Shown in pieces: positions 22,984-29,803 of a stretch of 64,000 bases of DNA (positions are counted from its first letter, which is position 1; every line of letters begins with the position of its first letter). The notes under the pieces were generated by a model. That model saw nothing but the letters and a program-made list of their open reading frames with translations, was not told where the DNA came from and ran no database searches. The stretch comes from Polymyxa betae A26-41 (Eukaryota > Protista > Endomyxa: Phytomyxea): positions 62,001 to 126,000 of the forward strand of contig RBZT01000373.1 of assembly GCA_003693705.1 (NCBI GenBank), in the 5' to 3' direction. The translations under genes and the position numbers were made by a program.

Positions 22984-24786
22984 CTATATTTGATTAGTTG
23001 TGGTTTCAGTCATGCCGGTTGCTGTGTTGGTCAACTCCTTATGCTCTGGAATAACTCTGCCTCCGATGATGTTCGCGTACATGCCATGCACCTGCCTCGA
23101 ATGTCGGTATTCGGTCCACAATCTGCTGTTGTTTGCCGCTGCTAAATATCTGGAAAACGGCCCATGTCTCAGGTTTATAAGCACTTCCTTCGTCGCAGCT
23201 ACGAAGACGTCGGTTTTCAGTGACTTTAATTTTACCGTTGTTTGCATTTTCTCGTTGACAACTTCGATTTTCATATGGCGAATGCTGCCGTCTTGCCCAT
23301 AGGTCATCTCTCTGTATCGCTGCTTTAAATCGTCCGATAACTGTATCTCCATCTGTGCAAAGTTATTCCTTAATTCCATCTTACTCTTCTAACATACCGG
23401 AGCATTCTTCGCCAAGAACATCTGCCCCAATGCTTTAGTTTTTGCTTATTTTTTGACTGTAATATGCTTACATTATAGATTTCTTTCTCTTTGTCCGCAA
23501 TATTCTTCTTGTCCTTCAGTTGTTTAAACTCCATAGTTGCCTTCCAGAATAGCAAATTTTCTAACGTCAGTCATTCAGATGTTTGCCAAATGCAAAGCCC
23601 TGGACTTACCAACGCAGAATTCCTTTTCGAGATGTGCTCGAAACGATGCAAAGCCAGCTTTAGTTTTTAAAAAACCTTCAAAGTCCTGATAATCATCGAG
23701 ATAATCGAGCCTGTAGCGCGATGGCTCCTTCTGTTTTCGCAAAGCTTCTACGACAGGGTGCGCAACAAGAATGTAGAAGTTGATCGGTGAGAACAACGCA
23801 ATCAACGCCAGCGCTGCCGGGTCCCATTGACGAAAGTCTGACTTTGCTACTGACGCTTGAATAACTGCCAACGAAACGAACATTGCGACAGAATATCTTA
23901 AAACGCGGCGAATGTTTCGTTTGAGACCAAATTCATCCACGACGACATCCATTCGATACGACATTATCATGCAAGCCACAAGGCATAGGGTGCATTTAAC
24001 CGTATGGATTAGTGCAAGTGTATAGCAAATTGGAACCTCAAAGAATCGGCATGATACAGCGTCAACAAGAAGCGACTCATTTGTAGCGGCGATAGCGATG
24101 ACAATTGCAATACTTACAACGATAAGATTGGCGGCGATCACTATTGAGGCGAACCTCATGGTAAGCAAGAATTTGCACCAATTGATCCATTTAACCAGTT
24201 GTGCGACAGCTTGTTCTTTTTCAGTTTCGTTAAGTTGTGCAGCATCTCCAATCTCCCCGATCCCAATCCGTCGCTTGTTAATACTGAAGATGGAGAATGA
24301 TGAAAATATGATTATGACGAAACACGATTGTAAGATATCTTCAAGAAGCAACCTCACAATGCTTTCCGTGATCCCAATCCAGCTGCCATTTTGAGGAAGA
24401 ATATGCAGAAAGCATTCACAGGACATATCCAACGCCACAACGACTCCGATAATCATTAGAATATCGGGACGGCGATACCTTACTGGATTTAGACGTCGCG
24501 TTCGTTGCAGGCCGATTAGACTGGGTATTATGTAAGCTAACGTCCAGATCCATAATATTGTATAGACCGCTTGAAAACTGTCCATACACTCTTTTGAATA
24601 TGATGGAATATCAACCAAGATCGTGTTTTCATAGGGCACCGTACTGTACCCATAGGCTCTTGAAATAGGTATAAAAGCCGTTTCTGCATAATTTGCATGA
24701 TCAACGTATTAACCACCTTTCACGCTTGCAGTCCTATTAACTTGAAAGAAGCTCTTCCAGTACAGCAATTTTCCAGTTTTGGTCAT
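22984..24786 (-). CDS. 7TM-RGS protein (AtRGS1-like architecture)
   Basis: Seven hydrophobic segments with RYRRP and VVDEFGLK linkers, then the RGS box GFASFRAHLEKEFCV|ENLLFWKA...EIYN|MFLAKNAP|MEIQLS...PFSRYL. Includes a 24-nt microexon. The start is inferred through one 5' intron. Confidence 0.85.
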
Positions 24787-27224: not shown

Positions 27225-27753
27225 GTTGCTGTGGAGATTGATTTCAAAATGACGGACTGCGGTTGCGCAGGATCAGGGGAGGCCTCACTGACTCGCTCAG
27301 CCTTGGAACGGAATGTGCGTTAGAATCTTCCAAGCCGCTCTTGTTAAGGCTGGGAAAGGCCGCAATCCAAGAACTGCGCAGTTCTCTATATACAGATGCG
27401 CGGCCTCCCTGTTCCGACCCGCTGTTGTGAGGAAGATTCGGGCCGCCTTCCTGGGCCTGGGCCGGGCGTCTCTCGTCTGCCACGACTGGTGTAATTTTGG
27501 GCAAAGCCTGCTCTCATGATTGTTTTCATTAACTTGATTCTTCAATTGATTGCATTCACTTTCATAATGGCAACGCTCGTGTGCACTAAGCAGGATTCAT
27601 ACGTCTTTTGATCATCTTTATTAAACGTCCATGATAAAAAACTGTTTCGATTCTTATAAACGTTTCCTGATCAAATCTCATTTTGTGGATCTGCTCGAGT
27701 ACAGTTTGATAAATGGGATCATTCGAGAATTTCTTTTTAACTCTCAGATATCT
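27225..27753. promoter_or_regulatory. Divergent promoter region between HSP70 and MscL
   Basis: TATATA at 27387-27392; two-unit heat-shock-element-like nGAAnnTTCn at 27322-27331 and 27431-27440; perfect 16-bp palindrome AGAACTGCGCAGTTCT at 27370-27385. Confidence 0.55.
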
Positions 27754-28526
27754 ATGCAGATGAGTGATGCCATACACAGGCGCCGAGGCAGCTCTGCTCC
27801 TTCGATTGTCGAAGGGCTCCGGCGTCTGATCGGGACCGGTAAAGTCTTCGACATGAGCATGGGTTTGGTCAGAAGCCTTTTTCCCAATGTCCAAGTTTGC
27901 TGACATTCCAACCCAGATCGTAGCCGGCTGCTTCTCCAACCTGGTCAGATCTCTAGCTGATAATATCGTAGCTCCTATAGTCTCCTTCCTATTACGTAAA
28001 CAGGAAGTTAAACGGCTGGTTTAGAATACTAAACGAGAACAGCTATAGAAGGAGCGTTAAAGAACATGTTCCATGTTCTACAATGTGGCTCTGGTTCTGA
28101 TGTATGCTCATATGATTCAGTCGAGCTAGGTTTATAACGTTACAACGTTCTCTTGTTCGCTCTTTGAGTGTTTTTAGCTTCAAAAGCGGGAGCTGTCACT
28201 CTGTATGTCATTGCTTAACGCTTGCCCCATTATGTGTGAGTTCATAATAGGAACTGGGGTGCTTTCATCCAGTCCTGGCTCAACGCCTTTGTACTAATTC
28301 TTGCAGTCTATATTGTGGTTAATGGTAACGATTTTCATTCCTTAAAAGCTTTCGCACTGAATCTATTTCAGTATACAATTCTACGTTTACGGAGCTCAGG
28401 TGGGAGGAACGCAAATGCCCATACTGTATCACAAAGATTTCGTCGGCTGCGTCCCGATGCCCAAATTGTACCTCAGAAATCGAGCCGGTTTCCGACGATC
28501 GTTTGGAATCGAAAAAATTGCCTTAA
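27754..28526 (+). CDS. mscL: Large-conductance mechanosensitive channel (MscL) with a C-terminal zinc ribbon, 6 exons
   Basis: Exons 27754-27867, 27917-27995, 28049-28129, 28178-28202, 28251-28324 and 28372-28526, with GT-AG introns of 47-53 nt and matching phases. Product (175 aa): ...SIVEGLRRLIGTGKVFDMSMGLIVAGCFSNLVRSLADNIVAPIVSFLL...SKAGAVTLNWGAFIQSWLNAFVLILAVYIVV...CPYCITKISSAASRCPNCTS. Not in the ORF track. Confidence 0.9.
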
Positions 28527-28784
28527 TATAATTATTCTATTTGCTTTTCGAATGCTGAGAGCTTTCAGCATCAATCTATAAGCTCCTGAAAACACGCGCC
28601 GCAGCCAAACGATCATTCATTTCTTTTCTGTTTACTTGATCTCGTATTGCATGTGAAGGAATGTTTAGATTCTTGATTCAAGCTGGAATCACAGAGAACG
28701 ATAAATGCTAACCAACTTGATAGCATTATCTGGTTGATAATTGTAATTTTCGATCAAGCAGAAGCAATGGTTGTAATAATGTAA

Positions 28785-29803
28785 TCATTGTAATGCCAGA
28801 TGCATTCCCAAACTACCCAATCGTGAAACTAGCCGAGCATTAGCTGGATTCATCTTACCAAGCAAGGATTGTGCAAAAGGTGATTCCTCAAACAGGGAGA
28901 CGTAGATTTTTGTGACGACGAACTGGCTGGATTTACCTAACACTGCCACACAGGCATCACTGATTTCGAGAAAATTTCCTGTCATCAAGCCCAAAGTTGT
29001 CATCTCCTCGAATCCTGATCTCTCAGCTTTGTTTGCACCTTGCCTGTAATAGCCTTAATCCGCTACGAGATATGAATATGTGCAGTTGATTGCAACATTT
29101 ACTGGTTGAAGGATAGGTTGCCTGGCAATATGGCTGTAGTAATGGCCATGGTTAAAGGCTGCTCTCAATGTCAATATGACAATCATGGCTGCGCTTACTT
29201 CCAAGATGGAATGTGGATTTGAAAGGCAGATCAGTTTACGATTGTCAGATGGGCAACTCGGGCTTAGTATCTGGTGAAAGCCACAAACCCTTTTCTGGAA
29301 ACATTCTGATTTCCGTCCTCCATTCCCCACCAAATTGCAGTTCTCTTCGTAACGAATATGGGACTGAAACAAAGTGAATTGACTGCAATGTGATCGCAGC
29401 TCCCAACTCGGTGCTTAATTATCAAGAACAAGGACAATCACGCTTTGAGAAACTGTGCGAAATCAGTAGACGAGGAGTCCACTGCGCCTTCATCAGCAGT
29501 TTTTAAGTTGTTCAAACCTCGCACTGAGCAGCATATATTCAATATTTCTTGGTAAGAGACAAACCGTTTCAACAAGTTGTTCTCATCGTGCAATAACAGA
29601 AGGGGTTGTTTGTAGTCCTCGTCGGTCTTTCTAACGCTGCATTACACAATCGTCGTTCTTGTGCCGAAAATCATCTTATATGCAAACAAGAATGGTATAA
29701 AACTCTCTAAATTCGAAGCGTTAAAGGCCATGTTCCATATACTCTGAAAACGTATGGCCCAGGCTCTGCTATATGCTTGCATTACGTTCTCGATGGCTGC
29801 CAT
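28785..29803 (-). other. Possible orphan multi-exon gene or decayed gene
   Basis: Several short minus-strand open stretches with candidate splice sites. No consistent model and no family recognised. Confidence 0.2.

Follow-up and report, generated by a model that had tools for sequence, protein, structure and literature searches.

A zinc-ribbon MscL gene with a divergent but conserved S1/TM1 gate in the plasmodiophorid Polymyxa betae

The window analysed here is a stretch of 64,000 nucleotides from the genome of Polymyxa betae A26-41, a parasite of beet roots. Positions 27754-28526 on its forward strand carry a gene of the MscL mechanosensitive channel family, made up of six exons and five GT-AG introns, which after joining give a single frame of 177 codons. 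The gene model was compared with transcript-derived contigs from four runs, of which X5 and X6 belong to one study and are identical in sequence to the window, while X2 comes from another study and a diverged strain; the fourth is X1. It was also compared with the orthologue in the clubroot parasite Plasmodiophora brassicae, PBRA_005338. The features are as follows, with residue positions numbered as in E. coli MscL.

27615-27753, forward strand: transcribed 5′ region; the X5 contig begins at 27615 and the X6 contig at 27633.
27754-27867, forward strand: exon 1, with the start ATG, an N-terminal extension, the S1 amphipathic helix, the G14 hinge, and TM1 up to position 23.
27868-27916, forward strand: intron 1, 49 nt, GT-AG, phase 0; joint found in X5, X6 and X2; same position in P. 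brassicae.
27917-27995, forward strand: exon 2, the remainder of TM1 (positions 24-43 and further); 20/26 residues identical to the orthologue.
27996-28042, forward strand: intron 2, 47 nt, phase 1; joint 27995-28043 found in X5, X6 and X2.
28043-28129, forward strand: exon 3, 87 nt, the outer loop with a Cys pair (codons at 28084 and 28105).
28130-28177, forward strand: intron 3, 48 nt, phase 1, donor GTTTAT; frequently retained.
28178-28202, forward strand: exon 4, a 25-nt micro-exon (also 25 nt in P. brassicae) with the loop motif KAGAVT.
28203-28250, forward strand: intron 4, 48 nt, phase 2; X5 and X6 also have it in retained form.
28251-28324, forward strand: exon 5, TM2, beginning NWGAF, hydropathy peak 2.2; 15/24 residues identical to the orthologue.
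28325-28371, forward strand: intron 5, 47 nt, phase 1; joint found in all four runs.
28372-28526, forward strand: exon 6, the end of TM2, a linker, a CxxC-x10-CxxC zinc ribbon (28416-28469), the tail and the stop.

An earlier note on this DNA, made from the letters alone, had proposed six exons, five introns and a 175-aa product, with RNA-seq as the check on the junctions. All five joints are present in the transcript contigs of X5 and X6. In the X2 contig introns 1, 2, 4 and 5 are spliced, and in the X1 contigs introns 4 and 5. The exon and intron count therefore stands, while the length of the product does not: the acceptor of intron 2 is at 28042 rather than 28048, and the 175-aa model is ruled out by the transcript joint 27995-28043 and by the 87-nt exon 3 of the orthologue. 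A mis-spliced model as such is ruled out by the spliced joints together with the conservation of the introns in P. brassicae. The start at 27754 is favoured, because the first residues of the orthologue are similar. A form longer by 41 residues, from an in-frame ATG at 27631 that lies within the X5 contig, is also possible; a further ATG at 27713 is out of frame. One low-depth X1 contig has 26 other letters in place of 260 bases at 27505-27766, which include the 5′ region and the start codon, and may represent a deletion in that strain, another species or a chimera.

The neighbours of the gene are an intronless cytosolic Hsp70, arranged head to head with it, and BBS1, about 2.7 kb downstream. 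Given these neighbours, the genomic context is eukaryotic and flagellate. A bacterial contaminant, which the earlier note had excluded from the introns, is ruled out by the spliced transcripts, the introns shared with P. brassicae and the Hsp70 and BBS1 neighbours, and the gene is host-encoded. There is no synteny with P. brassicae within 8 kb on each side of the MscL gene, and the head-to-head Hsp70 arrangement is absent there. The intergenic region between Hsp70 and MscL (27225-27753, about 530 bp) contains single GAAnnTTC/TTCnnGAA units at 27323, 27432 and 27722. On the other side, a spliced minus-strand transcript (28588-28900, CT..AC joint 28812-28859) converges on the MscL gene; its contigs extend to 28588 and the MscL contig of X2 to 28624, so that the 3′ ends may overlap. 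Two of its ORFs gave no Pfam match. Further away, a minus-strand ORF of 354 aa at 23575-24639 has several hydrophobic stretches and an end that resembles by eye the start of an RGS box (7TM-RGS-like), with no Pfam match at E 0.05.

Assignment to the MscL family was tested by searching the window gene exon by exon, and by using PBRA_005338 as a stand-in for profile, structure and tree tests on the whole protein; the joined window protein was translated for checks of its frame, hydropathy and codon changes. Exon 2 alone matches Pfam MscL (PF01741) with 17.5 bits and E 0.005, the exons being too short to reach the gathering cut-off; no other exon gave an MscL match in the Pfam search. Exon 6 matches zinc-ribbon models (DZR, E 0.0009). 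The orthologue scores 60.5 bits (E 2.6e-16) against PF01741, where the gathering cut-off is 27.4 bits, and its PDB search returned matches to MscL chains only. The match to MscL is not due to chance, since exon 2 reaches E 0.005 and five exons match the orthologue in order. Run on single exons and on the orthologue, the profile check bears out the claim of an MscL homologue in the earlier note. At 36.1 against 71 for TIGR00220 and 63.2 against 159 for PRK13952, the orthologue falls below both NCBIfam equivalog cut-offs. The protein is a member of the MscL homology family that lies outside the canonical bacterial equivalog.

The predicted fold is consistent with this. As modelled by AlphaFold (pLDDT 81.6, pTM 0.54), the orthologue has an N-terminal helix that breaks at the equivalent of G14, followed by TM1, a hairpin in the loop with one short helix, TM2 and the ribbon. 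Foldseek with this model gave MscL structures as its two best rows, although the E values of 0.017 and 0.075 are weak, and likened the C-terminus to zinc fingers of the NZF/RanBP2 type. VIA gave a Z of 6.3 to 3hzq, which is equal to that for unrelated helical proteins, and in the Atlas the orthologue has TM scores of 0.61/0.71 against a bacterial MscL cluster. The window protein itself has hydropathy peaks of 1.5 and 2.2, as for two TM helices, and keeps G14, giving the S1-hinge-TM1-loop-TM2 architecture. It has the AGAVTLNWGAFI motif, which spans intron 4; its loop ends in AGAV-x-x-N(Y/W)G, with CxxC-x10-CxxC about 44 residues beyond. It shares with E. coli MscL (PF01741, TIGR00220) the S1-TM1 region, the residues G14, D18, G22, F29 and P43, and the two TM helices. 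The match to residues 2-43 is ungapped, as had been aligned by eye, at an offset of 15 and with 14/42 residues identical.

The orthologue (PBRA_005338, CEO96734.1, UniRef A0A0G4INH9; P0043) was found by searching with an alignment of the separate exons. Five of its introns match those of the window gene in position and phase, its internal exons measure 79, 87, 25 and 74 nt, and exons 1-5 are 55-86% identical. It also shares the divergent gate, the Cys pair in the loop and the ribbon. It differs in its length of 191 aa, in one additional intron within the ribbon exon, and in a stronger donor for intron 3 (GTATGT, compared with GTTTAT in Polymyxa). Both UniRef and NCBI name it as MscL ('Large-conductance mechanosensitive channel'). 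It has this annotation only, and we found no paper on it; literature searches combining MscL with Plasmodiophora, plasmodiophorids, chytrids or zinc ribbon returned nothing relevant, in a search that leaves most subscription papers outside. The gene is therefore hidden, as first described, from the ORF track and not otherwise: its orthologue is annotated, and the P. betae genome holds three more MscL genes, all canonical, of which two are intronless (contig C462) and one has a single intron (C824). P. brassicae has at least four MscL genes. The divergent orthogroup coexists with canonical paralogues in all three plasmodiophorid genera (Polymyxa, Plasmodiophora and Spongospora), and a search for it gave plasmodiophorid matches only. 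Tandem pairs of intronless MscL genes occur in P. brassicae (L016 8001-9357) and on a metagenome contig (L014 2141-3531).

The zinc ribbon and the loop Cys pair, which the earlier note had singled out, are both present as described (the ribbon as CPYC-x10-CPNC), and neither is particular to this gene. The search that found the orthologue gave 4905 proteins. The named members of its top rows are bacterial, and 119 bacterial-type rows were scored: all carry the ribbon and 100/119 carry AGAV-x-x-N, while none has the two loop cysteines. The ribbon replaces the C-terminal helical bundle in 285/313 gathered homologues, a set biased to ribbon types by the queries. A eukaryotic innovation is rejected for the ribbon, which, like the AGAV-x-x-N(Y/W)G motif, comes from a large ribbon-type group widespread in bacteria. 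The bacterial members of that group (Anaerolineaceae, Caldatribacteriota, Novimethylophilus, Clostridiales) have the same long loop end, TM2, and a ribbon at an equal distance from TM2, and differ in having a canonical S1/TM1, no loop Cys pair and no introns. The loop Cys pair is not unique to the window gene either, as all three P. betae paralogues carry it along with the ribbon, and chytrid MscLs have it too; it marks a eukaryotic subset to which the chytrids belong.

Eukaryotic homologues, described as patchy in the earlier note, are less so than it says. Named members come from Batrachochytrium, Kappamyces, Borealophlyctis, Fimicolochytrium, Polychytrium, Quaeritorhiza, Linnemannia (Mortierellaceae), Calcarisporiella and the tardigrade Hypsibius, in addition to the plasmodiophorids, and Atlas clusters also include Ascomycota. 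The chytrid, Mortierellaceae and other eukaryotic MscLs (for example in Batrachochytrium, Kappamyces and Linnemannia) resemble the window gene in having the ribbon and in being often multi-copy. They differ in a near-canonical gate, with at most five departures at conserved positions, and the intron positions of the two examples checked (P0280 and P0203) are different from those of the window gene.

The unusual feature of the window gene is its S1/TM1 gate. The residues noted earlier were confirmed against the E. coli chain: G14, D18, G22, F29 and P43 are kept, and F7L, F10L, N15K, L19M, V23L and G26A are changed. To these we add R13T, A20S, A27G, A28C, V37A and D39N. L19M and V23L do not hold up as telling changes, being common states seen in 96/313 and 30/313 homologues respectively. 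Fifteen positions within residues 1-45 are near-invariant, defined as at least 85% invariant among the gathered homologues. The window gene departs at eight of them (F7L, F10L, N15K, A20S, G26A, A28C, V37A and D39N) and the orthologue at nine, whereas the next in line among about 306 homologues departs at five. F10L, R13T, A20S and A28C are seen in this orthogroup alone within the homologue set. The published S1 consensus is F-[KR]-x-F-[AIL]-x-[KR]-G (PMC4917966), where the window gene reads L-R-R-L-I-G-T-G, and the NhhD linker motif (PMC4569298) is replaced by K-V-F-D. The S1 leucines keep the hydrophobic face, and the changes in TM1 keep small residues, with Gly shifting from 26 to 27. K15 is also present in a solved archaeal MscL, in the PDB search alignment. 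The pore-face hydropathy is 6.3, against a family median of 9.0.

This divergent gate is strongly conserved between genera. Over positions 12-30, 18 of the 19 residues are identical in Polymyxa, Plasmodiophora and Spongospora, and the final 12 residues of exon 1 are identical in all three. Compared with P. brassicae, pN is 0.18 and pS 0.86, which is saturated. Compared with strain X2, nine codon changes are synonymous (about 132 sites) and six non-synonymous (about 399 sites), and all four changes in exon 1 are synonymous. The codon comparisons show that the gene is under purifying selection. The gate is not decaying: it changed in a burst and then came under strong constraint. The gene is older than the split of the three plasmodiophorid genera.

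Intron 3 is unusual in being often kept. X5 and X6 both have contigs with it spliced and contigs with it retained. In X2 one contig retains intron 3 with the other four spliced out, in X1 introns 2 and 3 are both retained, and the retained form is the only one found for intron 3 in these two runs. No retained form of introns 1 or 5 occurs in transcript contigs of the four runs. A sizeable share of transcripts keeps intron 3, contig depth being no measure of isoform level. Retention leads to an in-frame TAA at 28135-28137 and a frame of 95 aa that comprises S1 and TM1 together with most of the loop. In Spongospora the orthologue has a single record (P0336, 106 aa). This tracks the protein through exon 3 and then ends in Gly and a short unrelated tail, as would be expected from reading on into a phase-1 intron 3. 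The plain reading of the retention is slow splicing beside the micro-exon, or a substrate for decay.

The origin of the gene was examined with an IQ-TREE tree of 60 rows, many of them unlabelled and some given bacterial labels from length and source; Ascomycota, oomycetes, archaea and viruses were left out of the sampling. The labelled eukaryotic rows all fall on one side with respect to the bacterial rows (96/83). PBRA_005338 lies near the C824 paralogue, on a long branch (2.76, against a median of 0.86). Neither placing the orthologue beside bacteria (p-AU 0.45) nor a single plasmodiophorid clade (p-AU 0.13) is rejected, and we therefore name no donor. Ancestry from the ribbon-type bacterial group is likely, and domestication from bacteria, as the earlier note had it, is plausible.

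We consider that the product is probably a working tension-gated channel, or a subunit of one, with altered gating, and that it represents a plasmodiophorid-specific, gate-divergent paralogue within the ribbon-type MscL group (probability roughly 0.6). MscL is a pentamer in which force from the lipid passes through S1 and G14 into TM1, releasing solutes on swelling (PMC4917966, PMC13661626). By analogy, a pentamer of these subunits would sit in the plasma membrane or in that of an organelle. Tension in the bilayer, pulling on S1 and acting via G14, would tilt TM1 and open a non-selective pore, and solutes would be released on hypo-osmotic swelling, which would be most useful in wall-less zoospores or plasmodia. 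The ribbon, standing in place of the C-terminal bundle, is probably an assembly or tuning element; in Mycobacterium MscL the C-terminal domain tunes the threshold (PMC4917966, PMC13661626), so the ribbon may act likewise. Because the gate changes are mostly small-for-small or hydrophobic-for-hydrophobic (A20S, G26A with A27G, A28C, F7L, F10L), helix packing should survive them. Threshold, kinetics or conductance would differ from those of the three canonical paralogues, in a direction that is not predictable.

The spliced transcripts, shared introns, purifying selection, PF01741 score and MscL-like predicted fold all argue for such a channel. Against it are the departures from the S1 consensus and the NhhD linker, the orthologue being at 9/15 the most deviant of about 306 homologues, together with scores well under the NCBIfam cut-offs, weak Foldseek matches and a tied VIA Z of 6.3. 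The sizeable share of transcripts that keeps intron 3 also counts against it. The role of valve could moreover be filled by the three canonical paralogues and by about seven MscS-family (PF00924) loci in the P. betae genome (contigs C839, C70, C971, C616, C882 and C220), a number which makes graded valves plausible. Alternatively, the protein might make no working homopentamer and instead join the canonical paralogues and shift their gating, as a product limited to TM1 could also do. The loss of the S1 phenylalanines and R13, the strong conservation of a new TM1 face, and the coexistence with canonical paralogues in all three genera fit this, as do the retention of intron 3 in several samples and the similar ending of the Spongospora record. 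The retention, however, may be no more than slow splicing or a substrate for nonsense-mediated decay, the donor in P. brassicae is stronger, and contig depth does not measure isoforms; we regard a modulatory role as distinctly less probable than a channel.

Slightly less probable again is a repurposed MscL fold with a role other than osmotic rescue. In plasmodiophorids, swelling of a vacuole fires the Rohr/Stachel apparatus, and the protein might be a tension sensor or narrow pore of the cyst vacuole that drives penetration, or else a pore whose gating responds to redox state or metal via its Cys pair and ribbon. The restriction of the orthogroup to one lineage, its long branch, and a gate that is rewired yet frozen, with reduced pore-face hydropathy, are all in line with this. 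The ribbon and Cys pair, on the other hand, are ancestral to a far wider group, and hence no special adaptation of this gene. The many departures from consensus and the frequent intron retention could also be taken as signs of a decaying duplicate, a contaminant or a mis-spliced model. Such readings are highly improbable, with decay ruled out by purifying selection, spliced joints and shared introns, and the eukaryotic neighbours adding to the case against an artefact. A more speculative extension, on which we place little weight, is that plasmodiophorids have a second, specialised class of MscL subunit with a rewired S1/TM1 gate inside the broad eukaryotic ribbon group. This class might tune or partner the canonical channels, and its supply would be controlled by regulated intron 3 retention, which gives a TM1-only product.

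One review (PMC4204436) gives MscL as a single-copy gene in fungi and bacteria, and another (PMC3681921) finds none among pathogenic protozoa. P. betae, a rhizarian that parasitises roots, has four MscL genes, and the gate of one is non-canonical yet conserved, a natural experiment on the mechanosensitive gate that has been studied best. The gene also draws attention to a eukaryotic MscL group that has been overlooked, in organisms whose life cycle includes wall-less stages; the multi-copy, ribbon-bearing group as a whole (chytrids, Mortierellaceae, plasmodiophorids and a tardigrade) is undescribed in the searchable literature. The value of the finding is moderate, because an annotation of the orthologue existed beforehand and the traits that were most striking in the earlier note are family-wide.

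Some further homologues were noted in passing. The eukaryotic assembly GCA_025399215.1 has four MscL genes in tandem (L011 20-5322). In the tardigrade Hypsibius exemplaris (GCA_002082055.1; L015 4001-4780) a ribbon-type MscL with one 192-nt intron lies on a 373-kb contig, although animals have been described as having no reported MscL (PMC3681921). Viruses may have carried MscL from one eukaryote to another, and an MscL-like protein of the giant virus TetV-1 has been reported as packaged in the virion (PMC12126595).
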